A stretch of 64,000 nt of DNA from Oopsacas minuta (taxonomy: Eukaryota > Animalia > Porifera): assembly GCA_024704765.1 (NCBI GenBank), contig JAKMXF010000233.1:124001-188000 (forward strand), in the 5' to 3' direction. Each line of letters begins with the position of its first letter. Position 1 is the stretch's first letter. This document shows, in pieces, positions 5,519 through 60,533 of this stretch. The position numbers and the translations under genes are program-made. The notes beneath the pieces are model-generated. The model was not told the DNA's origin and did not search any database. It saw only the letters and a list, made by a program, of their open reading frames with translations.

Positions 5519-5520
<2 letters not shown>

Positions 5521-5555
<35 letters not shown>
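5521..5555. repeat. (TG)n microsatellite
   Basis: 35-nt perfect TG run. Confidence 0.97.
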
Positions 5556-5556
<1 letters not shown>

Positions 5557-7433: not shown

Positions 7434-8082
7434 AAAGATGTGTAGAAGATCTTCATTGAAAGTACTCAATCATGCTTTACAAGGAAAAGAAGGAATAGAG
7501 AATTGTATTAAATTCATAGACCTAGCTGGCTTACGTACAATATTTCCATTCTTTATGCTGCCGAATAAATCTTGTAAGAAAAATGCTATCTCTGGAATGG
7601 AACAAGATGAACATGTAATTTCAATTATACTCAGTCTATTACGAAATGTACAGGGTCAACATAATGATAGAATATTAGCTAAATTCGTTGAGAAAGATAT
7701 GGAAAAATCTGAGAGATTAGTTGAATTGCATTTTGTTTACAAACAACGAAGTTCTGTTTCAGATTCAATAATTTATAAAGAAATTCAGAGAACAAAGAAT
7801 GAAGATCGGTTAGATGAAGATGCTATATACATGAAGAGACTTGATGGAGGTTTGTATGTGTTACAACAAATTGATTTAATTGTTGTAGAAGTATTGTATC
7901 ATGGATCAGCTGCTTTGAAAGATAGAATATATAAACTATTCGAACAACAAAGAGCGAATATAGATTGTGTGAAGAGTGTTGTGATAGATTTTATACAACA
8001 TATGGGGGAAGCTTCTTCTGAAGCAGATCACGGGGAATTTAATGATAAGAGGAGATTAATTGAGATGGTTAATGTTCTGTAG
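7434..8082 (+). CDS. CTNNBL1: Beta-catenin-like protein 1, last exon only (about the C-terminal 215 aa)
   Basis: SLKVLNHALQGKEGIENCIKFIDLAGLRTIFPFFM...HVISIILSLLRN...EKSERLVELHF...YMKRLDGGLYVLQQI matches the CTNNBL1 C-terminus as recalled. Acceptor TTTAG ends at 7433; upstream exons not found in the window. Confidence 0.88.
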
Positions 8083-8446
8083 TAATTCTCTGTATTCTCA
8101 TATATTGTGATGTAGGAATCTATTAATTATTATTTCATTTGGCTGTTATTGCAGTATAATATTTAGGTATATGGCGCAACTAGGCTCCCGAGTCAGGGTG
8201 GGCGAAGATGACGTCTTCCCCACCTACCCGATACCTTTTCCGGCAGCCGGAAATGTCTGTGTGGTGATGGGTTATGACCCAGACCTATGGTCCTATGGGC
8301 TATCCAAAGAACAGAACCTATATTTTCCGGCCGTCATGGAAAAGCTGACCGGTCCATTTCTATACTCCTGTCTAAGCTCATCTAATAACGTTTTAAATTC
8401 CTTTTATAGACATATAGCTACTGATGTGTACTTCGTATTGATATTA

Positions 8447-34240: not shown

Positions 34241-37200
34241 ATGGATAGTTTTAACAGATTACACCGCTACCTACGTAGACAATCAATCTTCACTCCATTC
34301 CGTAATCGTTACAGATGGACTCTAGCTGTACTCGTATTGTTCTGCTTTACTCTTATTGTTATAACGAAATTGGCTAAATCTGATACTACAATCACTATTG
34401 CACATTTTGATACCAAAATTTATAATCAACAAATTATCGACTCTGAAGATCTGATCGCATCTAATCCGAAAGGTAATACAAAAACTTTTGTGCGATACAA
34501 TCACACAATCAACATCTGTGAAAAACTGAGCTGATAAATTTATCCAAAATCATTGCTTCATCCTGCCCGCGCGTGTTCTCAGAGCCAATTCTTTTAATAC
34601 TCATTCAAGTCATCCACAATACATGATTAGTATTTTGACTATTCTAATTTCTATCTTGGTAGAGATGGGGAGAATTTGACTCAAAGTTATTTTGAAATTT
34701 GGCCTAACATGATGTAGGAAATTTTCTATAATTATCATTGGTCAATGTGTAGCTAAATTCCCTAACAAATTATTTGGTTCAAATTCCTACTTTGCAATAA
34801 TTAAGTGAAGTTTTAGTCAAATTCCAGCGTCTCAACACATCGTGATGCAATATTATTGATTGGGCTAATTTGTATGAGCTATCATAACACCTCCAAATTT
34901 TCATATTTTGGGTCACGTGTACAAGCAAAGTTCTAAATTTCAGTTCCGTTCCGAATAATAGGCGTTTATGATGCGAATTATCGGAATGCTGAATATATTG
35001 AAGAATTATGAATATTTGATTTTTGATTGTTTTGTGTAAGAAATACTTTCAACCAATCATCATTTGTTAGTAATGTGACTCAATAACCTGATAATTACTT
35101 ACAATTCCGTGATAGATGTAAACACCAAGTCCCTTTCGACTTCTCTGAGCGGCTAAAAATGCTTCTGTATCCTGAAACTATTGCTGTCAGTTCAATTTTA
35201 CTCAATCAATTTTGGCATCAAATTCTTATACGCACAAATATCACTTATATTTCAATGCGTTGCACGTAAACACATTCTCTCTTGTTTAGGTATTTTGGAT
35301 TCAGAAGCTCATCATAAATCTCTTCATCGCAGCGTTACATTCTCTTACACACAGTCAGATGGATTTACTAACACTCATTTTGATTGTGAGAAGATCAAAG
35401 CTATAAATGTGAAATATGTAATAGCTAGTGGATTCAATTCTATTATGTATGCTACACAGGCTGATATGAGTAAGGAACTGTTTCAATAGTGTATATTCAT
35501 GTCTAGGTCAGCGGTTCCCAACCTATTCGCCCGCCCGTGGACCCGCTATACAAATTTTACCACATTCTGTGGACCCTGTTCGTGGAAAACCAAAGATAAA
35601 GTTGTTTTGAACAGCTGATTAGTTTCATATTTCTATAGTTAATATAGCTACGTATTATAAAAATTGAGAAATACCGTGGGATTCGCCTACAAGTCATATT
35701 TTGCAAGAATTTCCTTGCTAATATATAATCGAACTTACTATTGGAGGAAATGTCCCTGGAAAAGCATTGCTAAATGAACACCAATGTACATATACTGTTC
35801 TATCTTGTACACCCATAATCCGAAAATACACTAAAAATCTTGACGTGTCGTTGTAAGATTTCAGTGTACATAATTTGAAATATTTTCTTAATGTATCACT
35901 ATTTCCTGTAATTAGGTGGTGGAACAGGATGGCTATCCATCCGTATCGTCTCTAAAAAGTCTCCAGACGTATCAGCCTGTTTATCACAGTTTAAATCAAA
36001 AGACATCAAAATTGACTGTAGTGTTATATCCGATCAGATTCTCACTCATGAAGCAGAGCTCCTAAACAAATTCCATCACCCAAATATAGCACCAGTACTC
36101 AATGTGTGTAAACGAGTTGATGTTAGTAATCCTGATACATTATCTCGCGTAGGAAGTAAGTTAATGGTGTTGGAGGATGCTAGGCCTCTGGATATGAGTG
36201 CGGTACTGAAACTTGAATGGAAAGATAGGGTCAAGAAGTGTATTGATATTGGTGAGTGATAAAATTCTAACGTATACATGTTTTAGTATACTGTTCTTAT
36301 CTGTAAAAGTAACATATTGTGACTTTAACCTAATTATCAGAGATCGATTCAATTAGCAATACGCTACAACATAAATAATAATACATAGATTCATGGAAAC
36401 TCATCCAGGTGGCTCGTTAAAAGGCTTTTTTCGTAACAGATTTGATGTTTCGAAAATCAACAAAACTTTAGTAAAACTCGTTCTCGCTTCTACTTCTGCT
36501 TCTATTGCCGAAACCTTGACATTTCCACTTGATCTTACAAAAACACGTCTACAAATACAAGGGGAGACTTCAGGGCTACGGACAGTGGCTAAGAAGAGAG
36601 GAATGTTCCAAATGGCATGGGGGGTGATACGAGAGGAAGGGGTCTTTAAACTATGGAGAGGTGTAACCCCTGCTGTAATACGTCATATCTTTTACACTGG
36701 CTTAAGAGTGACAATATATGAAAACCTGAGAGAGCATGTTTTTAAGAGAAACTCAAAAGGCCAATTCCCACTGTATAAATCTATAATAGCTAGTATATGT
36801 TCTGGTATGACTGCACAGTTTGTTGCTAGTCCGATGGATTTAATAAAAGTACGTTTTCAAATGGACGGACGTCGACAGCTGCAGGGGCTAAAACCGATGT
36901 ATCGGGGCGTGTCTCACGCACTCACTACGATAGTCAGGGAAGAAGGGGTCCTCCGGTTATGGAGGGGTGTTGTTCCGAATTGTCAGAGGGCTGGGTTTGT
37001 TGCTCTTGGGGATCTAGCTGCTTACGATCTAGCTAAGCGAAGTATCTTACAGTATACTACATTTAAGGATGATATTATTACTCATATACTCTCATCTGCT
37101 GTAGCTGGATTAACTGCTACAACTTTAGGTTAGTTTATTGATTGTAACTTTATTTATATTAATTTCGGCCATTTTGACAGGATTAAACGCAATTACGGTT

Positions 37201-40200
37201 TTGGCCATATTAACTAATTCAAAATCTCAGAATCAGATACTATGTACAAGATTACCTTAACTATCTAAATCTCTAAATATATTTCCAAAAAGGTGTAAAA
37301 ATATGATAAATATACATATGTTCTATATTAGTTGTTCATTTGCTGTCCAGAACTTCTCATATTCCAGAATTAAATATAATTATATTTTTGTTTATCTATC
37401 AGGTACTCCAGCTGACGTCATTAAAACACGAGTAATGAATCAACCTACTAAAAACGGCAAAGGCATATATTACAAGTCGTCAATAGACTGTCTAATTAAA
37501 TCGGTTAAAAGTGAAGGGATATTCTCTCTTTACAAAGGATTCTTCCCGATATATGCAAGATTAGGTCCATGGTCCATAACCTTCTGGTTAATTTACGAAG
37601 AACTTAGAAGTATTTGTGGAGTTGGAACGTTTTAATATTTGCTCTTAACAACCATCACTACCTTACTAATCACGATATTTTATTGTCATTTGTTTCTGAT
37701 ACTTTTTCAATGAAATTGTTTATTGGCTTCTATTACCTATTAAAGTTAATACTTTTAGATTTGTGTGTTTTCTTATGGTTTACTGTGTATAATTTGTAGA
37801 GTAGACTTCACTTGGTTGAGTTACTTAGGGACCAGGTCATTTTGACACGATTGACAAGAATAATCCTGTTGGCCCGTTAACCCCAGCAATTTAACAATGC
37901 AGGGTCGCTGAACCTCCACGGGACCCAGAATCTTGTTCTTGATAAATTGGCTTAATATTAAGGAAATTTATATAATACAAATCCTATGGTAATGGTATTA
38001 TTGGGGTTATTGGGTTTGGTTCTTAATAAGTATCCTGAATGTATTTGCATGCTTTTATTTCTGGTGAAGTGATTTCTCTAAATTACATACGAACACGGTT
38101 AATGCAAAGCTCTGGATAAGGTGTACACATTTTGACGGTCCCTTGTCTTGGTTTCATATTAACTAAATTCTCAGCGAGTATGATACTGCCAAAACTTTGT
38201 GTTGATAGATTTATGTATCGACTTTATATAACAAAATTTCTTATTTATATATACTGAGAAAGTGTCTGTAATTATTATGTGTTTCTCTCTCCTATAGCTT
38301 CCATAGTAGACCTTCTCTACACAAATAACTCTATACAACTTGTACCCTTTGAACCGAGCCAATTCTACATATCATCTGCCGATGATGTTGTCAAGCTAGT
38401 TGATGTAGGCGGGCTGTTTAATGGTGAGCCTACATGTTCTAGTAATGAGGATTGCTATGTAACTAATACAGTAGTTACTGATTGTGTTGATGGGCAGTGT
38501 AAGGATTTCTCATGGAAGGCTAACTCTATTAATGCACATAGGTGGGTTGCTATTTCTATGAACTTTAGATAGAGTATCATATTAATTATTGTTAATTCGA
38601 TCCAGAATTCGAAGCTAGTTACAACCAAGCGATCAATCCACGCGAAATATACCATGTTTGACTGAGTATGATACATAAATGTTATTATCACATACTTACC
38701 AACATTACAGAGATATTCCTCCATCATTTAGGATAAGCGATTTCCTTGTGTAATGCCTGAAATATATATTTAATTCAGAAGTGAAACCAGGAATTTGACA
38801 ATTAAGTTCAGATAATATAGGCTAATGGTGTTATTGCTTATTGGTACATTTTACACAATTTACACTCATTACGCCCAAGGATCGCCAATTTTCGTACTCC
38901 TTATTACTCTACGTATTGCAACAACGAATATTCATTCAATTATTATTGAAAGGCTTGTTAAGTTACAAATTTGAATCCTTATTCGAAAATCGTTTTCACG
39001 TTAACAAGAGGCATTGTGTATACTTATATTGGAGTTATAGGACTGTTTAATTTGGTAAAGATCCAATATTCCACTTTATATACGATAGTTAACAGTGTAT
39101 CAATATATCTTCGCATGAGACGGTCCGCGTCCGGTTGTTCAGAGTTCAACTGGATTAACATTTGGACTCCTAATAGGAATAGTATTAGTCAACCGCACAA
39201 ACTCTGGTGGCTTCATATATTTAGTATCCGTCAAGTTGTCAGATTGAAATCTGTTTGCTATAGCATTGCAATTGTGCCATATTTTGATTGGGTTAATTCC
39301 TGAACTCTGCCATCCTATTGGTTGGTCGTGTGAATAGTCCTTTAGGTATTCCTATAAATACCCTTGTTTAGAAAAATATTATTTATTCATATATATTTTT
39401 ATACACAAATTAAACTACAATAATGCCATATTCTGAGAAAATATGTGAATTTATCAACGACACAACTCTACAGTTCTTTGTCCTTGAATTAGATGGCCGT
39501 CAATTTGAATATCATCTATTAAAAGAAGCAAAAGGTATACAACTTCTCAATATTATCCTGCATAAACATCAAATAACAGAAAGCACGTATTTTGGATTAA
39601 AATACACGAACAGTAAGAATGTTACTAGATGGATAAATATACGTAATCCATTAGTATTAGAAGTTGATAATCCATGTCTACCAATTAAACTTGAATTTGC
39701 TGTTAAATACTATGTGCCATATAATTTGCTTAATGATTTCCCAATCAAGAGTGCATTTCTTTCTCAGATCAAGAATGATATACAAAATGGTAGATTTACA
39801 CTTTCAGATGAAACTGACGATATTTTGCGGTTTTTAGCACTTTTAGCTCAAGCTGAACATGGCGCTTATTTCAAACAATTATCTTATACAACTCCACCTC
39901 ATTTCAGTTTGGAAAGGGACCTGATTGAAGAACACAAGCTAATCGAATCAATAAGTAAAATGGAAGCTCTTGATGAAGTGTTAAGAATCGCGAGTAGTTT
40001 AAGCAACTACGGTAATCATGAATATACTGTGAAGAATGGTTGCTTCTCAATTTCACCTACAACTTTCCAATATTCATTTAGAAATGTAACAAAGACTTTT
40101 CCGCTATATTTGATTATAGATGTTACTCGCGTTTATGGTAGTGTGTTGCTGTCACTGTCAAATTTCGAGCAATCTGAGACCAAAATAAAAATCAAACCAA

Positions 40201-43200
40201 ACTCCATTTCTGAAGCTAAAATCCTCCACAAAAATATCCTAGAATTAATGACATTCTTCACAAGGCCATGTGTAACTGAGGTAATAGCCGACGCAACACA
40301 TAGACTATGGAAAGGTGCGAAGTTCATAACAATCCACACATATGACGTCACACAAACTTGCAGCCAACTTAATCCAAGCTTATACTCAGTCAAACATCTT
40401 GAAACTGATCCTACAACACACTCGATAGAGAGTAGAATTCTGGAAAGGAAATCTAATAGCGAAGAATTCAAACTATACAAAGTTTGTTCTTTACCGGAAA
40501 TTGGACGGATTGTTAAGAGAAAGTTATCTTTCACTAGTTTGAGATTAAAAAGACAAGCTGGCACATGTCAAAACTCTGACAGTATTTCGTCTCATTCATT
40601 ATTATCTTCTGAGAGTATTGATGACGTGTTTAAAATCGCAGATAAAATGCTGAAATGTAAATTGTGTGATACGAAAGATTGCAAAGTGTTATTTCTCCCT
40701 TGTTGCCATTTCATCAGCTGTGAGGGTTGTTCTGACAACAGAAAGTCATGTTTGGAATGCAATTCTCATATAATAGAGAGAGTTAAGGTGTATATTAGTT
40801 AATTAGCTGTTTTACTGGTGTACTTGTTTATCTGAACATTTGAACTTTGAAATGTTTCGCTATTGTATTCTTCTGAACTGTGTGATCCTACAATTTATGG
40901 AATACCTTTTTTGTTTCTCAAGTTTTTTGGCGAAAGGTTATCTAGCAGTGAGCCAGTGCCGGATTTAAGTATGTGGGGCCCTCTTGGAGGGCAATTACCG
41001 GGGCTCCCTGAAGCCAATTCAAAGCTGTTACGGTTCGCCCACCTGTCCCCATTCCTCAATTTATAATGCTTGTGTTTATTGTATTCAAATTTTGCATATG
41101 TAAAATCAACCCTATAAGTAGTACCGCCTAGCTGAAGGCCTATTTCGCCCAGTGACAGCATGGCAGGACTTGTTTTCTAGTATAAGATTTATAGTGATTA
41201 AAATAGAATTACAGTGTTTATCAAATTAATGACGTTAAGTTTTGGGGGGCCTGTTCGGCCGCACACTCCTAACACTCCTAAATCCGGTACTGCAGTGAGG
41301 GAAGTGTCCAAGGTGGAATTTTAGATAATATGACCTTATATGGAAGTAAATTAAATAGACAGCGAACAATTTGGGTTGATAATTAAGCAACTACACCAGC
41401 CTATACACCAATGATGTTCTCCGAAATACCCGCTTATATCCAAATCTGAAATTGTATACATATGATCCCAAACCGTGAATTGACGTAAATTCCATCTGTT
41501 ATATCTAACACGGCCTTAATCGGAGTAATTAGTTCACTTAGAGCTTCGATATAGCTGGAGCCGGGAGTTGACTGTATTGGTATGTATAATATATGTGAAT
41601 ATGATTAATCTAATGATAAATCTAATGATACGTATTGTTGTGTCGGATTGTTGCCATCAACATAGCTAATAATTAAATTTTATGTACTATATTTCCTATA
41701 GAGTATTTTACAGTGTATTACTATCAAAACTCCCTCCTCCTGTACTGTTACCTCATGTAATGCCTTTATTAGAAGGAATACAGAAAGCTAGATTTAATCC
41801 TCCTAGTATTAAGAAGAAGTTGATGAAGTTATACAATGTGTCTCACTATATAGAAGCCCATGAAGTATTCAGAATTACAGGTCAGGATTTGAACTCTATT
41901 AGCTGTATGTGTTCTTGATACAGGAGAAATGGGGAGATGATGGAGCGAGATTTCCCTAATATATAGAATTTTCTAAGTTCTAAATATTTTTCACTAAAAT
42001 TAAACATACCATGGCCGTAGCATAGTCTTGGGTACTCCTATAATTGTATCTATTCTCTCTATCCCTCTTCTCCATCACCATTAAATTCCATTTACCACTC
42101 TGGTAGCTAAGTAATGCTTGCAATAACTCTATTTCTATTCATTAGGAGATCTAGACTTGGATCTTTACTACAATAACAACACATCACTTGGTATTAGGAA
42201 GAACAGAGAAGATTATGTGTATGATGAGATACCAGATGCTGAGATCAGTGATACGTATGTTCAGTTAGATTTATTATTCATCAGAAATACAGCGGTTATA
42301 TATTAACAAGTGGTATCGTTCCGATTGGGAAAAAGGGAGGAAATATTTCCCAAGATTTTCCCAGGGGGTCTCCAGAAGCCCGCTAAATTCGAATATCTTC
42401 GATTTAGGCAGTAGAACTTGATGTACTAAATTGTACGTACAAACCGAATTACGTCTTATCCGAATATTCTTCCTTTATATTTTGTACAAGATTTTGTTTT
42501 CCCCAAATAATAGCCTGAAGTTGCTATTTATGGATGTAACAATCTCGAGAAATTATATAAGGGATTGATAAGTGTACTACAGTCGAAATCAGCTTTTTTT
42601 CTCCCCAAGATGCACGATAAAAACCTGTATTGATGGGTGATTAACAAAGAAATTTCCTAATCACAGATACAACAAAAAGCTCCCAAAATTAAGATGACAG
42701 CACGAATACATACAATACAAAGTATATGCTTAAAGAGTAAAAGGGGAACCCCGAGCCTAAACCCCGATTTCGACTGTGTACTATTAAAGATTACGTATTC
42801 ATGTGTTTCTATTTGTCTATATTTAGTCACAATTACCACTGTTCTTCTACCATAAAGCCAGATCGCTGTGTATTCCCAGTAGACAGTCCTACTCAGGCAC
42901 AAGACCTGTGTTCATCAGATGACATATGTCAGTCTGTATCTATAGCTCCTAATCCAGCTAGCCAGGCGGGATGGTTCCTTGCTAGTTTAAAGAAATCAGC
43001 TTCTAATCTGCTATACAGACCGGGGAGTAGATTATTTCTTAAGAGACTACTGGAGAGACCTAAACCGCAGGTTAGTGGGTAGATTTATACAATCAGAGTA
43101 GTTTATACTGTGGACTATGGTTATATTAACGCCGGATATAAGTATCATCCTCTTGAAAACGGTACTCATACGTATTTCCCTGTTGTACGTATGCCAGTTA

Positions 43201-46200
43201 TAAAAACATACCAAATATTTGACTGTACAACTATTCATTAGTTATCCCTATTCTGATCTATATTATGCATATTCTCTGCTAGGTGAAGCACAATCTAGAA
43301 CAAGAGATTACTTTCAATCCTGATGTCAATAAGCTAGATAAAATTGAGGTATATTGTGTTTATTGAGGGATTAGAAATTTGGTACTAATCTAGTGTTTAG
43401 ATATACGTACATACGTGTTTGACTATAATTCTTACTCTAGGAAGAGAAGAAGGAGATTGAACAGAGAGAAATGATAGAAGATAGTATTGTGGGAAAACCA
43501 ATCGCATCAAGTTCCTTAGAAGTTTGTTTTAACTCTATTAAACTTATATCACACTCGCGTATATACTTAACTCCCAATTTTAGGCTATGCAGAATGATGA
43601 GTGTTATAGCTCAATATATTCTTCTTATAAAGATTTATTTGCTCAGAAGGAAGATAAATTAATGAAGATTTGTGGTTGGAATACTGGTACAGATTCTCAA
43701 TGGATTGAAGCTATGCAGACTTTATCACTGAGATCTGAAGGTATGTTAAAATTGTTATAGTATTTTACTATTTGTGTTAAGAGATAATTATATGTAGTAT
43801 GTAACGTCACATGTATTCCTTTCTATTTCTTACATGAATCATTCAATGGCCATGCATTATTCGAATTGGAAGTATAATTAAGCATTTCAATCAATCGATT
43901 CAACTATGCCGGCGAAAGTAGCTATTACTTTATTATAGGAAATTAACGCGAATGCTCCAATTCGCGTTAATTTCCTATAATAAAGTAGTCTTACTGAATC
44001 AATTATTTTAAAAGAGATTCTCTACACTTTAAATCAATTTCTGAAATTATTGTAAAAGTCTTTGATGACTTATGAAGAGAGAAAGAAGAATTTTCTATTT
44101 AATTATCGAAAGAAATATCTAGACTCATTCAAGATCTACAATGTCTGTATATCAATGAATTGCCATTTTCTATCAAGATTGAAAGTATGATTCTATTATT
44201 TCATTATTTGGATATTTGAAACACTGTTAGTTTGAAATTATTGCTCCACAGTTTAAAGTCTGTGGATATAGACCTAGCAACAGAGGAATTGGAAGCGTTT
44301 ATATAAGAAAATGAAGGCAAAAAGAGTGGTAAAATCTCTATTAAGGATTTGTTGAAAGCACTCAAAGATGGCCTGAGATTATCCGATATTAGAAAAAATC
44401 AATTACATAATGGGAACTAAGGATTACACAGATTTCCATTGATTTTATGCCATCTTCTTTTTACTACGGAAGATACTTGATAGATTGGACGAGTTTATGG
44501 ACTTCTGTAGCTAAACTTGACAACAATTTATTCAAGTAATTAATTCTACCTGAATTAGAGAAATTATCTATGATATATTATATCCCACCAGTTATTTCAG
44601 AAGCATTAACATTACCAGTTGGACTCTTCTCCTATCTAAAGAGAGAATCACAGTTTGATGTTGAATATTTAAAGGTGTCACTCTCTAGCATACAGCGTTT
44701 TGATCTACTAAATATACTGGATAAATGAGTTCGCACAAATACTCTTGAACTGTCACTAGATATGCTAATAATTCTATTAATCTCAGATCAGTACCACGGG
44801 TTTTAATTAATTACCTAACATTATAATGCAATATCATGACCGTCGGAGTGCATGGAAAGTGGGGCGGCCCATATAGCTAGTAATATAAAGCAGCCGTCCC
44901 TTATATATTCCTATACATACATATGTGATCTTATGATGTTGAATTTATTTCATTAGGTTTAATGAAGAGCTCTAAAGCAACACCAGGAGGAGGAATAAAA
45001 CTAAACTTAGGATCAGATCCTAATAAAAAGGCTTGGATGAAGATTAAACCTGATATGACGTCACAACAACGTCATATATCACAACTAGCATTCTTTCTAT
45101 TAGACCGATTACTGGGACTATTTGTTACTGTGCCAACTACTGGTAAGAATAATAGTAGCCTACAATTCTATGATTATCCTTACCTTACACCACAAGTGAC
45201 CAGCATTTGTAGCGATAGCTTGTATTACGAAATTTTAAAATTCGAATTATTTCTATCCCACTAAAATCCTATCATATCTACTTTATTCAATATGCGAATT
45301 TTCCTCTTCCCATCCCTTCTTACTATCAAAAACAAGCATTATAAACAAGATATATATTATGACATATATACTATTACTTATCAGGTAGAGTCATATTAAC
45401 TGAATTCCTCCACCTTTCTTCTAGCTCTCTCATATACTCTATCCAGTCTGTTAACCTATACCCTGTAATAGGGTTTTCTAATAGGCAATACATTAGATTA
45501 TTCTCCTGTGTAGAACTGAGTATTACTGTTTGTAAATGTTTCAGTATAGACACGATAAAATACAGCTGATAATCTATTCCCAATATTAGTACGGTTAAAA
45601 TGTAACTGCAAATCTCTTCGAAATCAAGATAGTTTAAAAAGCATTGTTGTAGCCATATACAGCAAATTGTACCTAGGGATACTCCGCTGATGTGTAATCC
45701 AGCGTAAATACACTGTAATTCTGCTTTGACGATTAATTCTAAGTTATGGAGAATGTTTGTAATACCCCAGTTACGTCCTGTCACTACCAAATCCTGTGGT
45801 AAGATTTTAGACTTGTGCATACGGTTTAACCAGATATAGCATGATGATAACTGTGTGGAGAATGAGGATAATAGTGTGAATGCTGTATGCACGTCTCCTC
45901 GCGTTAATATGAACATAATACCGATAAACCAATCGTAACAGTATGTATCAGACTGTAGAGTATTCAGTAAATTATTCTGTAATGTATATTGCTGGTTAAT
46001 GAGAATACCTTTCATATTAGCAATTAATAATAAGAGCTGTTTACAGTCTGATTCTTCGTCTTTCAGTAATCTGAGGTTACAGCCATATTGTACTATTAGT
46101 TTGCTGGCTATATGCTCGCTAGATGATGTCATAAGTTTTATATTGCTATCAAAAGTCACTGTATTTTTAGGAAATACACCACCATAGGCCTGACACATTA

Positions 46201-49200: not shown

Positions 49201-52200
49201 AACAATTTATATCTCATATATAGCACATATTGGCTGGGAAATTGTATGCGTTTTGACATTTCATTTTCGATTTATTCTGAATTGATGGTTGTTGAGGAGC
49301 GTTTTTACACCCTCAAACATTAAAACCGCGCGCATATATATATCTGCAACTTTATTTTTTCCAATAAATACATCCATATTACTCAAATAATCTATTATTA
49401 TGTGCGATATACAATAATTATATAATTTAACAATATTAATTATCATTGCTAAAATCCAATAATGCATTAACCTTTTCCATCATGTAACACTGTACTCTTT
49501 GATTATCTTTATCACAGACGTATAAGAACTTTTCAGAAGCATATATTCCATGTAGCTTATTGAAATGTCCAGGTGCTATACCCTCACTACCGAAATTTAG
49601 ACAAATAGAGCTGTCAGGACTATCGTACATGATAACTTTATTATTTGCATAGTCTGTTACCATTATAACTCCCTCTTCATTGATTGTAATACCAAATCCA
49701 CCTAATAGCTCATTCGGGTCGTTTTGTATGCCAGTCAAGTACAGTAGCTCTCCCATGACGGTGTACACGTTAATACACGGTGTGCCTGTGTGTAGTACTA
49801 CAACCTGTCCGCTTGTGTTTGTATCGATGCTACGAGGCTTCCGTAAGGGCCCTGGACTATTGTCTGCATACCCGATGAAATGTGAGAATGTTACTGGGAT
49901 ATTCTTCTTCAATACTTGCACACGGTTGTTGCCAGAGTCGCAAACTAATAGGTAAGCCTCATGACATTTTAATCCGGCTGGGTATTCAAATTCAAGTGTA
50001 CCAGCACCTCGTGTGCCGAGATGTTCCACGAGAACACCAGTCGCTTTATCGAACTTGTACACAATATGCTTGTTGCATATTGATACGTAAATGTATAGAG
50101 GATCTACTGTTATACCTCCTAGTGATAATGAACCTGATTTTTGTATTGAGTAAGTCTTGTCTAAGCGGAATTGTGAGTCGAATACTTTAATTTCTTTTCC
50201 TTGTACCAGATTCAGTAAGAAAATACGGCCATCTTTTGGGTCAGTAGCAAGTGCGTGTGGTTCTAGCTTTCCAATTGTTTGAGGGTCACTGTTGATGACA
50301 CGATACGGTGTTACATTTCGCGGAGTTAGGATTATTTTACCGAAATTATCAATCTGATCTATCAATGTTCTATCAAAACTGAATTTGACATCTGTGTATT
50401 TTGATACGCTCATACTTTCTAGATCTCTAATTTTGTCCTCTAGTGATTTTAAAAGACTTGCTTTTATTGTTCGGTGATTTTCGATTGTTTCGCTGTCAAG
50501 TGCGATGTATTTTGTACGTTCAAATCCATTAATTTTTGTTATTTTATTCGAGACTGCCAGCATTATTTCATCTTCAAGTTCTTGCAGTCTGTTTAACAGC
50601 AAATCTTTTCTCTCTTGTATCTTCTCGGATAGAACATTAAATTCGTCAGTTACCCTTTCTCTAGCTGTGTATATATCTTGTAATATAAGTGGATAACCTT
50701 CTTTATTGATTGATGCCATTTTTGTTTGTAAATTTAAATCTAATCGTTTCTAGATAACAATTATCACCTGCTATTTATACTAGAATCTAAGGCATTTATT
50801 TGCTTTGCATTACTATTGTTGCCATTGCCTTTTCTAATTGCTTTCAATTTTGGGTTAAAGCATAGTAGAGTAATACTATACTGCTCTTATTACTGAAATT
50901 GTGGGAATTATCTTATATAGATTGCCTCATAATTATTAATCGTGGCCTTGTGGGTAATTACAAGACGAGACTTGAAAAGCTGTTTCGAATACATCTGTAC
51001 TTGATTCGGCTACTATCTTAGAAGTTTCCACCTTTTAGCTTGAAGTATCTTCTTGTGGTTCTGTATGATTGGAAATTGTATTGGTTTATATGTTCGTGAC
51101 ATTATGGTTCTCTCTTAATTGTTTCATCTATATATGTGGTCAAACTTTGAATATGAACAAAGCTAATGCTTGCTATTTACCATCTGAATATCATATGCGA
51201 ATATACTATAATGTTATCTGTATCGTACTAGGTACACTCTTTTCTATTGATTTAATGGCCATTGTGTTGTGATTATATTTGATTGCAGAAAGTCATTTCT
51301 CTCCGCTCAGTCACTTGAGGTTTGTATACCATTGTAAATATATCTGAGGTTTCACTGACTAGCTATATACTTGGAATTAGAAATCCTTAAAATAATCAGC
51401 GTTTTATCTACTTCTACGGCTCTACCTCCCCTATGAAGTAGAAGAGATAGTCTAAATACATAGATATACTATCTTTGAAATGTATCTGAATTTTGTATTA
51501 TAATCTCCCGTGAACTCAGAAGCTGATTCAACAAAGTATTATCTGCTATATTAGTGTATTTAAGATGTTTGCTAGTTACCTCAAGAGGTCGATACTATCC
51601 GAATATGTACGATTATCATATCGCTATAAAATTGCTAATTTACTTGAGATCCGTGTATTCAGTTATAAATCAGCTGATTTATCTCAGTTGTGTATTTATA
51701 TATTGCATTTTATCCTAATTATTTGGGCCACCAGAAATGGAAATTAACTTGCTTAACTCACGTTTTGGATTATTCTTGCCTCTAATTAACTCAAAGGAAA
51801 TTTTTATCTAAGCAAACCAGTTTGCTATATTTTAGATGAAACACATAATTATCCTATAAGGATATATACATGCTAGTAGTGGTGATAAGCATTTTCTTGG
51901 AAATAATTGCTAATACATTTTCTTCATTGGAAATGATAACAGACTTGTGTACATTACTACTGAATTTTACCAAAGAAAAATGTATTCTACCTCCCGATGT
52001 ATGATGTCTACATTACCATTGGAGAATGTTGTTGTCATGTTATTGATGGTTTAAGTATTATACGAAATCACTTCAAATTCCCTCCTTTTCTTACTACGAA
52101 TACATTAACATGTTCTAATTATTGTTAGTATGTATTGGATCATGCAGACAGGCGTATACATTGTAAGAATTGATCGTGGAAAATAATATGATTTGACTCC

Positions 52201-55200: not shown

Positions 55201-58200
55201 GGCAATAGCCATTATAGGTACCTGATTTGTGTATTTATTCTTTCCGGAAATTGGTATTAACGAGGTTCCACTGTATAGCATTGTTACACGAATCTTTTGG
55301 CCATATAGATAATATAAATTCAAGATTTCCTCAGAAATGTTTGCTTGTTTGTTATTTGTCTCTATTTTGCAAACAAACGAAAAAACATCTATTTTGAGTA
55401 GCGTATTTACAGATTGCATTATTACAAATATATTATTTCTTAATCACTTTCCTTTCTTTCAACGTCTAAAATAGATTTTGTTCAATTATAATCTAATTAC
55501 GTAAATAAGGTTTTTTGTTGCGCCAACATTCATCATAACTAATTGCTAAACTAACGAAGCAATAATTCTACGATTATCGATGGAATGAATTTGATTAAGA
55601 AGATTATTGCAATCGTATTTAGTAATTCTAATAGCTTTACTATGGATTCATTACTAAATTCACCTTTTGTATTATTGGTTTTGGAGACACAATTAGTACG
55701 TACTATCCGAGTATACGTCTTAAGTAGATGTGTTATAATGAATGGGAACTAAATTTGTTTGAAAGAAAAGTACGTATTTATCGAATTCTGCTGTATATGG
55801 CATCCATTCATGGTCATTTAATACAATAGACTCTCGTTAATGCCATGGTGATATTACACATCTTTCACTGAATACAGCAGTTTGTGAGATACTTCATTAA
55901 AATACTCTCAATATATTGAAGATGCTATACTATATCATATTATCCCATTACATAGGTCGTAGACTGTTAGTGAATGAGATAACAGACTCAGACATAACTA
56001 TTGCACTCAGCAAGATGCAGATATCTCCAGATGAAGACTCCTCATTTAAATGCACCCTATCTGCCTGGGCTACCTCAGTACAGGGGATAGCTGGACAGAG
56101 ATGGACTCTAACTCCTCAGAGAGAGATTTCTTGGGCTATTAGCAGTTTCAGTCCGAGTCAGAAGAATCAGCTGGCTTTCTTACTGGCTAATTGGCTTGGA
56201 CTTATGCCATTTAAGTAAGTATTAGTTTGTTTGTTTTAATATTTGTTATTGAAGGTGAAAGGAATCGTGTGTATACGCATAATCTTGAAATTCACAAGGG
56301 TGCAATCCATATTCATCCAGTCTATTCCATTATTCTCAAATATCTGAAACAAATTCTAGAATGCAGTGTCTATTAAGAATATTTATTAGAAGATTCCCTC
56401 TAAACTAGCAATGATATTTGATACTTTATTTAGAGATTATTAGACTCAGGTTAATCAATTAGTATGTCTATATTCACTTCTAATAAATTTGAACAACCGG
56501 CTTAGTTAGAACATTTTGAGCATTGCGCCAGGCATTACGCCAAGTACCAGTGCCTATATATGCGCCAGTAGCCCGTGAAGGCTGGAAATGCCACTGAACC
56601 TGGTTCTTGAAGATGTGTCTGCACTCTCGATCCAGTCGTACGGCCAGATAAATACTTTTCTATAACAGCCTGGTTTTTACCTTATGTAATGATTTGTATA
56701 AGAAATTTTTAATTCTCAACAATTGGCAAATACTGTCTCTAAGCTCTAATGTAATAAAATATTACTGAAATTGGTTTCTTTAGGCATTAAATTATACCAA
56801 ATTTCGAGATCCTAATTCTAACATAATTTGCGGATATAAAATTCACACAGTAGTGCCTGTGTGTTAGCTGTTAGATGCTAGCTCACCCGCACTATTACTA
56901 GACCTTTAATACCTTCGAATTTAAATTAGTAAAAGATGGCGGATAATGTAGCAGTCTCATTGGTAAATCTTGTTTCGGGGAAGAATGGAGATGGTGGTGA
57001 TGACGATGGTGTTGAAGCATTCCAAACCAAACCATACCTGAAAAAATTCGTCAAACGCAGGACAGAAACCAAGATATTAAAGTGGCAAGGTACTGACCAG
57101 GATTACACAGAACTCAATGACGTATTGGAACATTACAAAATGGACAAATTGAAGAGGATGTTATTGGGAGGTGCGCCTTACCTATACAAGAAAGATGAAA
57201 ATAATTATGCTATGACACATGCAGCATTCTACTCACGTACAGATATCATGGAGATTATCCTAGAGAGACATAGAAACGAAAAAACCCCAGATGATGAGGA
57301 CGAATTTCAACACCAAACTTGTCTAGCACTCTACACAATCTGTTCAACGAACTGTGGAGACATAGTACGTGCACTTCTAAATGTCGCTACGCCTGTAATC
57401 CCACAAGCACATTTGAATCAGGCAGCCGCTACAGGCAGTACTGCTGTACTAAATGAAATTTTAACATTCTTCCCTAGAATGGATGTCAACCCTAAGGATG
57501 GTGATGGTAACACTCCATTACATAAAGCTGTTGAAAACAAGCACGCTCACACAGTGCAGTATCTTCTCAATAAGAATGCTAACCCTAATGCAGTGAATAA
57601 TGATGGATACAATACTGTACACATGACATGTCAATATGCTGATGAGAGTGTTCTCTATCTTCTCACGACAAGAAATGCAGATGTGAATGCAAGAGAGAAT
57701 AGAGGTAAATCACCAGCTCTGATTGCAGCTGAGAATGGGAAAGAAGGTTGTATCCATATCCTAGCTGCAGCAGGGGCAAATCTAGATCAGAGAGACAAAC
57801 AAGGTAACGCCCCACTGATCGTGGCAGCTGGTCTAGGTCACACGAATACAGTGAAAGAACTGATCCTCAATGGAGCTTCCTTTGACGTAACTGATAATGA
57901 ACGCTACAACGCACTTGAAAGGGCAATTATCAACAAGAGAGATGGAGCAGCAGCTATGTTTATTCGTCTCGCTCCACAGATCGACTACGTCGATTATTAT
58001 CGAAATACGATGGAAGTTAGTATGTTAAAGATTGTTCGCTACCGTCTTACCGAAACTATTAAAGCTCTCCTTGATCGAATGGTTGTGCAATTTGATCCAC
58101 TAAATCCCATCAAATGGAATATACAGACAAAATATCTAGATGTTGATAACACAGGTAAAACTCCAGAAGATGATGAATATGAAAGAAACAAAACTTTTCT

Positions 58201-60533
58201 CTTACAATACATAGCAGGTTTACATGATGAAGAGATCGCTTACCATGGGACAATACGTCTCGTGGTTAATAAGAAAATGAAACAGTTTGGCAATTTAATC
58301 CTGGGGTTTAAGATATTTTCCTATGTCATATTCCTACTGGCTCTTGCATACACTCTTATTCAAGCTTCATATGAACCTGTTGAACTCGATTACACCAGTA
58401 GTCCAGCAAATATATTCAGGATATTCACCGTCGTAATCGTGATGTCCTACTTCTTTTTCAATCTTATTACTGAAGCAGCAGAGTTCTTCAGAGTGACTAG
58501 ACTCACATATAGGTACTTAAAAGATAAACATAAGGATAGAACAAAGGATAAACAGAGAGCAGCAACGATAGAAGGTGAACTCGAAAATGATGACGTCAAA
58601 CAGGACGATGAGGATTTTAATGATGATGATGATGATGATGATGCAATTCAATTCAATATCCCAATTGAGAGAACAGGACCTAAGAAACAGTCCTTGAAAG
58701 GCAAACTGAATGATCTGTTTTGTATTCGTATTTTCACACAATTCTTTAGTGATAGGTCGAACTATTTGGATGTTTTGGGACTGTTTTCACTCTTCATTCT
58801 AATCTTGCTTCGTGCTGCCCAGCAACCAGCCCAATGGGTATTTGCTACTATTACATTCCTAATCAACGGATTCAGATTGTTCAGACTAGTAGCATTGCTT
58901 CCTCATATCGGGCCATATACTAATATCATATACAAAATCCTCGTTTTCGATGTTCCACTATTTTCTAGTCTTTTCCTAATCACACTTCTAATCTTCACTG
59001 GAGGATATTTCGTATCTCTGAGGACTCCATACACAGCCGCTGGGTTTGCTAATGCCTCCTTAATGGAAAACACAGAACGTACAAGGGGTGTAGACAATGA
59101 AGTACAGTGGGTCTTCCTATCAGGACTTAGAGTACTGCTAGAGGGGAACGTATACGAGGGTCAGTATTTGTTTAGACAGCTTAACTGGCTTGCTGCCTCA
59201 CTCTATCTGGGATTCTTATTCCTCACGGTTGTTGTGTATTTAAATGTGTTCATTGCTCAGCTATCAGACAGATATGGAAATGTAAAGAAATTTGCCGAGA
59301 AAAATTTTGCTTGGCACCGACTGAAGTTTATTGTACAAGTTGAGAGGATATCTCTATTATCAATTTGCATTGACTTCAGGAAGAAATATTTCACGAATGA
59401 GATTATTATCAACAAAGAACAGCTGTTTAGATACTATGGTGTGCATAACATCAAAGGTTTGAATGTTAAGAATTTCACTGAGGATGTTGAAGTGAAGGGG
59501 ATGCTTACTTCTATACAGAATCAACAGGTTGTGGCACGACAGACACATGAGATAGCCAAGCTACAAGGTGATCCTCCTCCTTCTCCTCAACAGCAAAGGG
59601 AGGGAAATGTAGAAATTCGACAACTAAATAACAAGATTGATCAGTTGATGGATAAGATACAGCATAAGGATGCTTTATTGGAGGAGAAACTTGATAAATT
59701 GACTCAAGTTTTGCTGGCGAAAACCTGAAAATTGAAATCTGCATGTGTATTTATGATGCTTTTATGTTTTTAGTATATTCAGGCTGTTGCAACATCCAAA
59801 TTGCAAGATAGTTTTGTGTATATTAGGTTGAGATATTTGTAGTTGTATATATTTACTATCATTTGTACTTTCTATATCTATTGCTTTTGTAAATGGTGGA
59901 ATCTTGTGGAATCTAACAGAGATTTATCCATCTTTATGCCCGGTCGGGGATATTATGTCGTACCGTATAGCATTGCAGACTGACGTAATAATAACCCAAG
60001 CAATTTACATGCCCAAATACAGTTTACTCACGTTATATCAAAGCTCAAGGGACTGTGCTAATTACTTCAATATAAGCGGAGTTCAATGTATTCGTGTTGG
60101 ATATAACAAGAGTTGACTGTATTATATTCCGATATTATATTGCAATACATGATGTTATGAAATTTTTACGATTCTCTCCTTCAGGCCTGAAAACGCAGTT
60201 CAAGTACAACAAGGTTACAACATACATATAGATAATGATGCTGCATTCACTGTTGTACCGAATGATATCTTTCTCTACTTCAACAATTGTCAATTCCCCA
60301 AACATGTGATTGAGATTTTAATTAAACTCCGTGAGAAACCTGAATGTACAATTGCTTCTATTTTGTACAGAGCTCTTAATGCAGATCCTCTCAATATTAC
60401 TTTTGCCTTTTCCACACAGAATAATTTCTCTTTGAAGATTGTCGATCAAATGGCTAGAATATTATTACAAACAGCTGATCAGTGTATTAAGAGGTTTGGA
60501 CAGGATAATGTTCTGTATGAAGATGACTGGTAA
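34241..60533 (+). CDS. 13-exon type II membrane secretory-pathway protein with tandem PKDCC/VLK-like and Fam20-like (pseudo)kinase domains, 852 aa; host of six nested genes
   Basis: Exons 34241-34472, 35290-35469, 35916-36251, 38298-38541, 41702-41880, 42146-42254, 42827-43070, 43283-43348, 43441-43521, 43647-43740, 44957-45142, 55956-56214, 60185-60533. All introns GT-AG, all phases match, total 2559 nt = 852 aa + stop, no internal stop. Motifs run across junctions: KKCIDI|ASIVDLL, NAHR|[21 protein letters not shown]|RRL, GLMPFK|PENAV...HIDND...[13 protein letters not shown]. Confidence 0.85.
36393..37635 (+). CDS. SLC25A27: Mitochondrial uncoupling protein 4, 2 exons (36393-37128, 37403-37635), 322 aa
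   Basis: Three carrier signatures ([43 protein letters not shown]); the phase-1 GT-AG intron restores LG|TPAD. Confidence 0.93.
39353..39360 (+). promoter_or_regulatory. Candidate TATA box (with upstream ATTGG / reverse CCAAT) for the nested FERM-RING gene
   Basis: TATAAATA about 60 nt before ATG 39423; ATTGG near 39317. Motif match only, in AT-rich DNA. Confidence 0.4.
39423..40802 (+). CDS. MYLIP: FERM domain plus C-terminal RING E3 ligase (MYLIP/IDOL-like), intronless, 459 aa
   Basis: FERM N-lobe ([10 protein letters not shown]...TYFGLKY...RWINIRNPL...LEFAVKYYV) and terminal IAP-type RING CKLC...[15 protein letters not shown]...CLECNSHI...KVYI. Confidence 0.78.
   Translation: MPYSEKICEFINDTTLQFFVLELDGRQFEYHLLKEAKGIQLLNIILHKHQITESTYFGLKYTNSKNVTRWINIRNPLVLEVDNPCLPIKLEFAVKYYVPYNLLNDFPIKSAFLSQIKNDIQNGRFTLSDETDDILRFLALLAQAEHGAYFKQLSYTTPPHFSLERDLIEEHKLIESISKMEALDEVLRIASSLSNYGNHEYTVKNGCFSISPTTFQYSFRNVTKTFPLYLIIDVTRVYGSVLLSLSNFEQSETKIKIKPNSISEAKILHKNILELMTFFTRPCVTEVIADATHRLWKGAKFITIHTYDVTQTCSQLNPSLYSVKHLETDPTTHSIESRILERKSNSEEFKLYKVCSLPEIGRIVKRKLSFTSLRLKRQAGTCQNSDSISSHSLLSSESIDDVFKIADKMLKCKLCDTKDCKVLFLPCCHFISCEGCSDNRKSCLECNSHIIERVKVYIS
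40954..41292. mobile_element. hAT-type MITE
   Basis: TIRs CAGTGCCGGATTTA ... TAAATCCGGTACTG; 8-bp TSD CAGTGAGC / CAGTGAGG. Confidence 0.85.
45374..48991 (-). CDS. TBC1D32: Protein broad-minded, intronless, 1205 aa
   Basis: [62 protein letters not shown], and C-terminal TBC-like [43 protein letters not shown]. Confidence 0.9.
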   Translation of the reverse strand: MSNETSSQSESNKLIPGLYKVVSGLNKVNTASKPSSDLLLQLDPNDTNELTSKLKDKLTKCLGPLVAKELEKHNENIISNTHPGVIVNSISENVLDSQSYAELYSSLSNSLKEATLSVVDEMELHSREGSLNNYLSVDSQTSESISLNLQYACMPYISSNYLKELVNKFDTSNSPDVRREALQAIIQFSPSEILSCPDWPTLHMLVTRSLRDQDAFISNNSFGILLRLFSTSNLTAIKEAYLILVEHLLETPYYSQQVRHGIDVCAMENAGLIQKFHLLTLFIHWLPSYWFRFNNAFMTEIIDKTINLLMLCIDHESLVSFSNSHSISPMHILSIIDHKAEWFQKLIHAEYSRTFIVQKLEKHPAFLCTIVEYILAYLRLFQHNAAILEEDIGELDYFYNETSLSYLFFIALLNIIQNFIIFECRLIIFPQTFDGEYFKDKNDAAIHFITIILENLYNENNSIEKQLDPYYITLNALMKILQKGNKLFLDGKILTSLMRSINSKSGSVVSFYQANSHLSYVYDVIQNLTESDTGRKHFFNHEHTHLADLVAQTKNLLQSIPITVLPSTIRGILAPVINLFSTPEGIIHEDTYKIIQLLTGLLKKPAFIQNSSNKYELLHIMSNVMATPKGIVCLKQNNILDDCIEILFLNTDVNLNSYKNSSIRYGYILSQVSNFSFSTNPLQSTSLLDYLTDTLNKQLNRTNEPLLHQQASLIAPLNRSLHKAMYNMAKVFVNYATLIEIVDRKSIEENVTTNIAQFLLDHVLVKSNERINDICNFEEKHVIALALFNLMLSSLDNFLLLEDQFGITTILLSLQNSTVVINDVQVFDQLWYERNRSLLKVGLLGGPKEKMHPHNSLHCYEEIDKNKFQTFKEFPIPTSYGYFKERIPWLPDESKEFPIAQQELQIWFTKLLSSNQNIVILKTTNALLQHIMCQAYGGVFPKNTVTFDSNIKLMTSSSEHIASKLIVQYGCNLRLLKDEESDCKQLLLLIANMKGILINQQYTLQNNLLNTLQSDTYCYDWFIGIMFILTRGDVHTAFTLLSSFSTQLSSCYIWLNRMHKSKILPQDLVVTGRNWGITNILHNLELIVKAELQCIYAGLHISGVSLGTICCIWLQQCFLNYLDFEEICSYILTVLILGIDYQLYFIVSILKHLQTVILSSTQENNLMYCLLENPITGYRLTDWIEYMRELEERWRNSVNMTLPDK
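49436..50719 (-). CDS. Coiled-coil plus NHL-repeat beta-propeller protein (TRIM/NHL-like, no RING or B-box), 427 aa
   Basis: N-terminal heptads, then NHL motifs FEYPAGL...[40 protein letters not shown]...[12 protein letters not shown]. Confidence 0.85.
   Translation of the reverse strand: MASINKEGYPLILQDIYTARERVTDEFNVLSEKIQERKDLLLNRLQELEDEIMLAVSNKITKINGFERTKYIALDSETIENHRTIKASLLKSLEDKIRDLESMSVSKYTDVKFSFDRTLIDQIDNFGKIILTPRNVTPYRVINSDPQTIGKLEPHALATDPKDGRIFLLNLVQGKEIKVFDSQFRLDKTYSIQKSGSLSLGGITVDPLYIYVSICNKHIVYKFDKATGVLVEHLGTRGAGTLEFEYPAGLKCHEAYLLVCDSGNNRVQVLKKNIPVTFSHFIGYADNSPGPLRKPRSIDTNTSGQVVVLHTGTPCINVYTVMGELLYLTGIQNDPNELLGGFGITINEEGVIMVTDYANNKVIMYDSPDSSICLNFGSEGIAPGHFNKLHGIYASEKFLYVCDKDNQRVQCYMMEKVNALLDFSNDN
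53635..54639 (-). CDS. RABGGTB: Rab geranylgeranyltransferase beta subunit, intronless, 334 aa
   Basis: [95 protein letters not shown]. Confidence 0.97.
55124..55273. mobile_element. Tc1/mariner (pogo/Tigger-like) MITE
   Basis: TIRs CAGTGGAACCTCATTAATAC ... GTATTAACGAGGTTCCACTG (19/20 match); TA on the right flank. Confidence 0.85.
56936..59728 (+). CDS. Ankyrin-repeat TRP cation channel (TRPA/TRPV-like), paralog 1, intronless, 930 aa
   Basis: Ankyrin repeats ([39 protein letters not shown]); six-TM region with [11 protein letters not shown] and [13 protein letters not shown]; TRP-helix-like [14 protein letters not shown]; terminal coiled coil. Confidence 0.9.
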   Translation: MADNVAVSLVNLVSGKNGDGGDDDGVEAFQTKPYLKKFVKRRTETKILKWQGTDQDYTELNDVLEHYKMDKLKRMLLGGAPYLYKKDENNYAMTHAAFYSRTDIMEIILERHRNEKTPDDEDEFQHQTCLALYTICSTNCGDIVRALLNVATPVIPQAHLNQAAATGSTAVLNEILTFFPRMDVNPKDGDGNTPLHKAVENKHAHTVQYLLNKNANPNAVNNDGYNTVHMTCQYADESVLYLLTTRNADVNARENRGKSPALIAAENGKEGCIHILAAAGANLDQRDKQGNAPLIVAAGLGHTNTVKELILNGASFDVTDNERYNALERAIINKRDGAAAMFIRLAPQIDYVDYYRNTMEVSMLKIVRYRLTETIKALLDRMVVQFDPLNPIKWNIQTKYLDVDNTGKTPEDDEYERNKTFLLQYIAGLHDEEIAYHGTIRLVVNKKMKQFGNLILGFKIFSYVIFLLALAYTLIQASYEPVELDYTSSPANIFRIFTVVIVMSYFFFNLITEAAEFFRVTRLTYRYLKDKHKDRTKDKQRAATIEGELENDDVKQDDEDFNDDDDDDDAIQFNIPIERTGPKKQSLKGKLNDLFCIRIFTQFFSDRSNYLDVLGLFSLFILILLRAAQQPAQWVFATITFLINGFRLFRLVALLPHIGPYTNIIYKILVFDVPLFSSLFLITLLIFTGGYFVSLRTPYTAAGFANASLMENTERTRGVDNEVQWVFLSGLRVLLEGNVYEGQYLFRQLNWLAASLYLGFLFLTVVVYLNVFIAQLSDRYGNVKKFAEKNFAWHRLKFIVQVERISLLSICIDFRKKYFTNEIIINKEQLFRYYGVHNIKGLNVKNFTEDVEVKGMLTSIQNQQVVARQTHEIAKLQGDPPPSPQQQREGNVEIRQLNNKIDQLMDKIQHKDALLEEKLDKLTQVLLAKT

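Follow-up and report, generated by a model that had tools for sequence, protein, structure and literature searches.

A glass-sponge gene that joins a degenerate PKDCC/VLK homologue to a probable Fam20-like domain in one predicted luminal membrane protein

Introduction

To our knowledge, phosphorylation of proteins within the secretory pathway and in the extracellular space is carried out by two known families, VLK/PKDCC and Fam20, which share no sequence relationship and have so far been regarded as separate systems. Here we describe a gene of the glass sponge Oopsacas minuta whose product carries one domain of the first kind and, probably, one of the second. The gene occupies positions 34241-60533 (+ strand) of the window, a stretch of 64,000 nucleotides (nt) from contig JAKMXF010000233 (positions 124,001 to 188,000 of the forward strand, assembly GCA_024704765.1), and all coordinates below are those of the window. 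The window's intronless genes match this contig residue for residue, and the assembly belongs to the O. minuta genome project (PMC10280926).

Fam20A activates Fam20C through dimerisation and not through catalysis (PMC4421793, PMC5865150). What makes it a pseudokinase is a Gln in place of FAM20C E306 (PMC4421793), and Fam20A also carries a Gly-loop insertion. Among sponges, Amphimedon has a single Fam20 protein, which is a Fam20B-like xylose kinase (PMC5865150).

A first-pass annotation of the window had proposed a single hidden gene encoding a fusion of two inactive kinase-like domains, of VLK and Fam20 type. On balance we favour the reading that one gene encodes a membrane-anchored luminal tandem of degenerate PKDCC/VLK and Fam20-like domains, which would act as a non-catalytic scaffold or regulator. 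The parts of this reading differ in strength and are graded separately below.

Results

Gene structure and topology

The exons were first placed by canonical borders and phase and were then corrected with other hexactinellid assemblies and RNA reads. All 13 have AG/GT borders and compatible phases, and the spliced frame, from the start ATG at 34241 to the stop at 60531-60533, contains 873 codons without a stop. The exons and the amino acids (aa) that they encode are as follows.

Exon 1, 34241..34472, + strand: aa 1-78; start codon, Arg-rich cytosolic tail, predicted signal-anchor helix (aa 27-45); donor G/GTAATA
Exon 2, 35290..35469, + strand: aa 78-138; PKDCC-like domain begins (DCEKI, VIASGF); AG/GT, phase 1 to 1
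Exon 3, 35916..36251, + strand: aa 138-250; kinase N-lobe; R147 for the beta3 Lys, alphaC E183 kept
Exon 4, 38298..38541, + strand: aa 250-331; catalytic-loop region, P266/E268 for D/R, D285 kept, G287-G288 for DD; first Cys pairs
Exon 5, 41702..41880, + strand: aa 331-391; PKDCC C-lobe helices
Exon 6, 42146..42254, + strand: aa 391-427; acidic, Tyr-rich insert
Exon 7, 42827..43070, + strand: aa 427-508; C-terminal four-Cys module of PKDCC
Exon 8, 43283..43348, + strand: aa 509-530; charged linker
Exon 9, 43441..43521, + strand: aa 531-557; charged linker, Glu/Lys-rich
Exon 10, 43584..43740, + strand: aa 558-610; conserved segment preceding the Fam20-like core
Exon 11, 44957..45142, + strand: aa 610-672; Fam20-like N-lobe, with MKS..GGG loop, K638/K640, Q647, Q652 and LDRLLG..VPTTG
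Exon 12, 55956..56214, + strand: aa 672-758; middle of the Fam20-like domain, ending G-L-M-P756 versus G-N-M-D of FAM20C
Exon 13, 60185..60533, + strand: aa 758-873 and stop; Fam20-like C-lobe, with IHIDND including D774 and C-terminal helices

The rebuilt model reproduced exactly the start, the stop and the exon number of the first-pass annotation, and the motifs quoted there (DCEKI, VIASGF, LSIRIV, HEAELL, FHHPNI, W.DRVKKC, HIDND and others) are all found in the spliced product. Its length of 852 aa did not hold: the RNA-supported borders give 873 aa, 21 more, and the discrepancy is probably attributable to one or two misplaced borders. The gene model is far beyond chance, because it contains 12 consecutive phase-compatible canonical junctions, and because three other assemblies have AG/GT at orthologous positions and exons whose lengths agree modulo 3. 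The span of 26.3 kb is due to six other genes that sit inside four of its introns.

Residues 27-45 form the top 19-residue segment in hydropathy (2.44), and the preceding tail contains 7 K/R versus 1 D/E; hydropathy and charge bias together confirm the N-terminal transmembrane anchor of the earlier proposal. The product is thus predicted to be anchored in membranes of the secretory pathway as a type II protein (N-in, lumen-out), and its two tandem kinase-like domains are separated by a charged linker of ~50 aa.

Transcript evidence for one mRNA

Reads from four runs of one sample, available as short Logan contigs, were compared with positions 40700-45400 of the window. Three of the runs are DNA, as indicated by their flat depth of ~70-90, and one (X4) is RNA, since its depth (400-1500) follows the exons and it shows GT..AG joints as well as ends with Illumina adapter. 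X4 supports eight of the 12 junctions, either as GT..AG joints (41880>42146, 42254>42827, 43348>43441, 43521>43584 and 43740>44957) or as matching loose ends. For junction 4>5, the last 30 nt of exon 4 reappear as the loose end ahead of 41698; for junction 7>8, there are loose ends behind 43072 and before 43281, and the end of exon 7 precedes 43283; for junction 11>12, the loose end behind 45144 equals the first 30 nt of exon 12. One contig (X4 record 29) contains exon 10, exon 11 and 110 nt of exon 12, and exon 7 is also covered by X4 contig record 27. The supported junctions include the jumps over nested genes (4>5 and 11>12) and the link between the domains (9>10>11>12), and the small linker exons 8 and 9 (43283-43348 and 43441-43521) were added to the model from X4.

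The mapping of reads to the 12 junctions, which the first-pass annotation had named as a check, therefore succeeded in O. minuta RNA for these eight and not for 1>2, 2>3, 3>4 and 12>13. Junctions 1>2 and 2>3 are spliced in a 905-nt transcript contig (L005) of another glass sponge and are also used in the NCBI model P0010. The junction VPTTG/R of the earlier model (phase 1, G + GT, then CGT) proved correct, because the RNA joins exon 11 directly to exon 12. For the same reason two overlapping frames at 51914-52125 (+ strand), which look Fam20-like by eye, are not needed; these open reading frames (ORFs) require a frameshift, are not conserved in the hexactinellid locus L003 and lie outside the transcript, and this false lead is a caution against matching motifs by eye. 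An ORF at 44559-44674 was likewise rejected as an exon, with a phase misfit, no joint and an RNA depth of 7.

These data bear on the explanation that a PKDCC-like and a Fam20-like gene are two separate genes, joined only by read-through or by chimeric assembly. The NCBI annotation does divide the region into three models, and no single contig spans exons 1-13, the Logan contigs being short. However, the RNA contigs chain unbroken from exon 4 to exon 12 at similar depth (about 400-1500), crossing the domain boundary as the proposed single-gene fusion predicts, and every joint is in frame and of the GT..AG type. No read-through past exon 11 was found, X4 depth being 0 at 45253-45400; as the RNA depth drops to zero after exon 11, the read-through end of an annotated 387-aa model is an artefact. 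In addition, exons 8-13 have no signal peptide of their own, and the annotation can be shown to be in error (in P0010 the kinase domain is interrupted by a mitochondrial carrier). Two separate genes are thus extremely improbable.

Two further features of depth were observed in this region. Over 40700-40856, at the 3' end of a nested FERM-RING gene, X4 word depth reaches ~18,700 and exceeds that of the host exons more than tenfold; the gene may be highly expressed, or the contig may also derive from another sequence. In the DNA runs, word depth is ~1000-8600 at the intronic stretches 41014-41327, 42427-42583, 43840-43996 and 45096-45252, versus the baseline of ~70-90, with small indel variants and many loose ends; these stretches are dispersed repeats of up to roughly 100 copies.

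Conservation and selection among glass sponges

The gene was compared with other hexactinellid assemblies (loci L003, L006, L007 and L008), fetched via exon-sized ORF products. Conserved islands coincide with the exons and occur nowhere else outside the nested genes; this comparison uncovered exon 6 and led to 42827 as the corrected start of exon 7. Three other assemblies preserve the order of the exons, their splice sites and their phases, with exon lengths equal modulo 3. Nonsynonymous divergence (dN) from the three ranges from 0.007 to 0.30 versus saturated synonymous divergence (dS), with dN/dS far below 1.

In the PKDCC-like part, exon 1 has 80-82% aa identity in L006/L007 (dN/dS 0.065), the AG/GT borders of exon 2 are conserved in L006, those of exon 4 and its length are identical in L006/L007 (dN/dS 0.04), exon 6 is a conserved island in L006 (90% nt) and in L007, and exon 7 has 89% aa identity in L007. 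Between the domains, exon 8 has no detectable conservation in L007 and exon 9 is weakly conserved there (62% over 26 aa). From exon 10 onward, aa identity is 85% for exon 10 (L007, dN/dS 0.03), 98% for exon 11 (L007, dN 0.007), 99% and 94% for exon 12 (L003 and L008, with AG/GT and the 259-nt length conserved in L003) and 91-96% for exon 13 (L003/L008, with the acceptor AG and the 349-nt length conserved). Nested and neighbouring genes show 63-84% identity between the same genomes, versus 91-99% for domain 2. In one species, a single 398-kb contig carries exons 1-11 (L007) and 12-13 (L008) in order and on the same strand, at distances of about 19 and 24 kb. The gene is expressed, under selection and old within Hexactinellida, and the substitution rates indicate strong purifying selection, which is strongest on domain 2.

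Partial copies were also detected in the sample with L007/L008. Two other contigs contain isolated, near-intact copies of the final 77-82 codons of exon 13, adjoining NHL, ankyrin, lectin and integrase genes (L004 10016-10246 and L010 10247-10492). An inverted second exon 12-13 region, in which exon 12 is frameshifted and the neighbouring genes are broken, lies on the same contig (L009 5040-5301), and is either a decaying duplication or a fold-back assembly artefact.

Domain 1 is a degenerate PKDCC/VLK homologue by alignment

A local hidden Markov model, the PKDCC profile, was made from 42 proteins found with P0008 and P0009 as seeds, the source-named ones being called PKDCC or PKDCC-like. Domain 1 (aa 28-499) matches this profile from end to end (164 bits, E 2.6e-52, model 14-470 of 472), in agreement with the assignment of the first-pass annotation. 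By BLASTP, the spliced product matches P0008 with E 4e-30 over 427 columns and is collinear across the 4>5 junction. The relatives of P0008, which come from molluscs, brachiopods, arthropods and vertebrates, bear the name extracellular tyrosine-protein kinase PKDCC or PKDCC-like. When exon 3 was used in an exhaustive HMMER search, the matches were only hexactinellid orthologues, P0008/P0009 (435-aa PKDCC-like proteins) and two bacterial repeat proteins (P0006 and P0007), which were rejected as spurious because their score comes from many weak repeats. Atlas features of exon 3 are those of a protein kinase (score 0.95). Single exons searched against Pfam for PF12260 or PF07714 gave nothing above E 0.03. 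Both hallmarks of PKDCC, an N-terminal signal anchor and a C-terminal four-Cys module, are present in the product; exon 7 reaches the end of the profile, and C432, C441, C455 and C461 align with its Cys columns.

In an alignment with 124 PKDCC proteins, R147, P266, E268, G287 and G288 of O. minuta stand at positions that are K, D, R, D and D in 124/124 proteins, so that the earlier reading of Arg for the beta3 Lys and Pro for the catalytic Asp was right. E183, Q271, F272 and D285 (the first Asp of DxDD, D in 124/124) are kept. The same substitutions are visible in three other hexactinellid species. The alignments indicate that domain 1 is a complete PKDCC/VLK homologue by descent, which has lost five family-invariant active-site residues. 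Since the Lys, the Asp and Arg of DFR and two Asp of DxDD are replaced, it would not be expected to be an active tyrosine kinase.

The loop encoded by exon 6 (aa 391-427), which is acidic, Tyr-rich and conserved in L006 and L007, is inserted in the PKDCC-like domain and resembles a cluster of tyrosine sulfation or phosphorylation sites.

Domain 2 is probably Fam20-like

Against Pfam, the top family for exon 13 (115 aa) is Fam20C (E 0.011, model 118-217 of 218), and the orthologue P0001 gives the same result; exon 12 alone has no Fam20 match. A second comparison used five peptides of mouse FAM20C, decoded from published mutagenesis primers: MKSGGTQL (Gly-loop), DMTVFDFLMG and GNMDRHHY (catalytic-loop), IHLDNGRG (metal-binding) and ALDRRLRI (C-terminal) (PMC3416761). 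The ordered chain of these peptides, with spacing limits, scores 53 on domain 2, versus 25.4 +/- 6.6 for shuffled sequences (4 of 5000 reach 53) and 24-40 for seven real control proteins of the window, in what is a crude test that partly overlaps the Pfam evidence. The spacing is close to that of FAM20C, both from the catalytic-loop to DN (18 vs 20 residues) and from DN to the C-terminal helix (73 vs 71). Domain 2 keeps the metal-binding D774 and a candidate ion-pair Lys (K638 or K640). In human numbering, Q647 and Q652 probably stand at E306 and E311 of FAM20C, P756 stands at D458, and D774 stands at D478 (roles from PMC4421793 and PMC3416761).

The Fam20 motif order of the first-pass annotation is thus recovered, with FAM20C-like spacing, and so are Gln at both Glu and Pro at the catalytic Asp. 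Its family call is supported by the motif chain and by the top Pfam match of exon 13, but that match is below the curated cut-off. Overall, domain 2 (aa ~558-873) is probably a member of the Fam20/Four-jointed kind. It did not arise by duplication of domain 1, because hhalign of domain 2 against the PKDCC profile shows no relation (probability 0.2). No relatives were found in JGI metagenomes scanned with exon 13, and none of the 176 fetched proteins contained domain 2 except the exon-13 ORFs. A search with the domain-2 exons under a long PKDCC row, a poor alignment, listed only vertebrate PKDCC proteins.

A putative regulator and its alternatives

From the residues present, both domains are predicted to be pseudokinases, neither of which would transfer phosphate canonically. 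By analogy with pseudokinase Fam20A, which serves Fam20C, the protein may be a luminal nucleotide- or partner-binding scaffold or an allosteric regulator, with two regulator modules carried by one chain. The first-pass annotation had proposed the same kind of role, with a speculative link between extracellular Tyr and Ser phosphorylation.

Several results speak against parts of this reading. Junctions 3>4 and 12>13 were not seen in the reads; the former was placed by phase, conserved AG/GT and lengths and the unbroken PKDCC profile match, and the latter by phase 2+1, conserved AG/GT and exon lengths. Q647 and Q652 are putative counterparts of E306 and E311, and this pairing requires a loop shorter by 12 residues. 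The Fam20C match of exon 13 has 15.9 bits versus a gathering score of 26.8. Searched singly, the domain-2 exons gave no match to solved Fam20 structures in the PDB and nothing in NCBIfam; exon 12 alone was unrecognised in Atlas; and AlphaFold on exon 13 alone with three orthologues gave an unusable model (pLDDT 41, pTM 0.33). The 91-99% identity of domain 2 fits an enzyme at least as well as a scaffold. Finally, POMK is a secretory "pseudokinase" that can be active (PMC5865150).

The sub-threshold Pfam support and the empty PDB searches would also be expected if domain 2 were another, possibly new, luminal domain, whose short motifs would resemble those of Fam20 or of PI4K/HipA-type kinases through chance or convergence. 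For exon 13, Atlas points with low recognition to several families at once (PI3_PI4_kinase, HipA_2 and Fam20C at 0.86-0.93), and domain 2 is ~100 aa shorter than the Fam20 kinase domain and lacks its Cys-rich insert. However, Fam20C is the top Pfam family in both orthologues, the match covering the C-terminal half of the model end-to-end, the motif chain retains FAM20C spacing, and a luminal location suits Fam20 rather than PI4K or HipA. We therefore consider a different domain quite unlikely.

A second alternative accepts the architecture and assigns catalytic activity, through a relocated or unconventional active site, to at least one of the domains, the Fam20-like one being the likeliest; its substrate would be a protein, a glycan or something else, and the PKDCC-like pseudokinase would be its built-in partner. 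Domain 2 is more conserved than the other proteins compared (91-99%, versus 65-84% for neighbouring genes of the same species). A mere scaffold would not usually be so constrained, and for this reason the alternative, unlikely as it is, retains appreciable weight. K638/K640 and D774-N775 are kept. Fam20 proteins of sponges and Hydra are xylose kinases, POMK was once called inactive (PMC5865150), and a single Gln to Glu change restores the activity of Fam20A (PMC4421793). Against this, all three acidic positions needed by FAM20C (E306, E311 and D458) are non-acidic in domain 2 (Q647, Q652 and P756). A more specific form, which we regard as improbable, would make the VLK-like part an in-cis activator or substrate-docking module of a Fam20-like domain active through an unconventional site, a cross-family, single-chain counterpart of Fam20A-Fam20C that might act on hexactinellid-specific matrix or skeleton proteins.

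Nested genes and the deposited annotation

The six genes inside the introns are the following.

Intron 3, + strand: mitochondrial carrier gene
Intron 4, + strand: gene for a FERM-RING protein
Intron 11, minus strand: three genes, for BROMI, an NHL-repeat protein and a prenyltransferase beta subunit
Intron 12, 56936-59728, + strand: gene for an ankyrin/TRP-like channel of 930 aa

The carrier and FERM-RING genes occupy the same introns in L006 and L007. The ankyrin/TRP-like gene is present in the L008 species (917 aa). In the L003 species, intron 12 measures ~630 bp and does not contain it; the most similar gene there is located downstream, on the opposite strand (L003 18241-20363). What is nested in intron 12 has therefore undergone rearrangement within hexactinellids. 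Glass-sponge genomes are known for nesting; in Aphrocallistes vastus it concerns about 12% of the genes, and the low number published for O. minuta has been attributed to the annotation method (PMC10282587).

Three models are deposited in the NCBI record for this gene, and exon 13 (60185-60533) has no annotation there.

34241-38572: 634 aa with a mitochondrial-carrier domain; LOD99_2905 (P0010), an O. minuta hypothetical protein
41682-45264: 387 aa, no Pfam match; starts in an intron (ATG 41682) and, unspliced at the exon 11 donor, continues to a stop
55922-56218: 98 aa; exon 12 as a stand-alone ORF model

P0010 consists of exons 1-3, most of the nested carrier and then exon 4 with read-through, so that the carrier is spliced into the middle of the kinase domain. 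This chimeric model is attributable to the nesting of genes in the host introns, and the locus is a clean example of nested genes breaking automatic annotation in glass-sponge genomes.

Comparison with known systems

A search of full-text literature revealed no description of a PKDCC-Fam20 fusion or of a tandem secretory pseudokinase, and none of the ~170 PKDCC relatives listed has a Fam20 domain, in line with the statement of the first-pass annotation that no such fusion was known. What is new is the architecture and the corrected gene model, not the families, because both are already known. A natural fusion of VLK/PKDCC and Fam20 domains, retained under strong selection in an early-branching animal class, would be genetic "Rosetta stone" evidence that both systems can cooperate. 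If the reading that we favour is true, the protein would be a double secretory pseudokinase, a kind for which no report was found in the literature searched.

Like PKDCC/VLK, the hexactinellid protein can be matched from the signal anchor to the four-Cys module, and the alphaC Glu, the QF of the catalytic loop and the first Asp of DxDD are kept. It differs from that family in that the catalytic residues K, D, R, D and D are R, P, E, G and G, and in its acidic Tyr-rich insert (exon 6) and its second domain, whereas the listed PKDCC proteins have 380-690 aa and none has PF06702.

With Fam20A, domain 2 shares Gln at the position of FAM20C E306, the retained metal-binding Asp and a predicted luminal location. 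Fam20A, however, keeps the catalytic Asp and the ion-pair Glu, where the sponge domain has P756 and Q652; domain 2 is also shorter, lacks the Cys-rich insert and is fused to another kinase-like domain, and its family membership is sub-threshold. The Fam20B-like xylose kinase of Amphimedon demonstrates that sponges do have secretory kinases of the Fam20 type (PMC5865150). That protein is an active, monomeric, single-domain kinase, while domain 2 of O. minuta lacks the acidic active-site residues.

The arrangement of the chain as a whole recalls that of the JAKs, in which two kinase-like domains are likewise present in one chain and at least one degenerate domain is expected to regulate. The domains of JAKs are cytosolic paralogues of one family, and one of them is active; the sponge domains, in contrast, would come from two unrelated secretory families, and both look degenerate.

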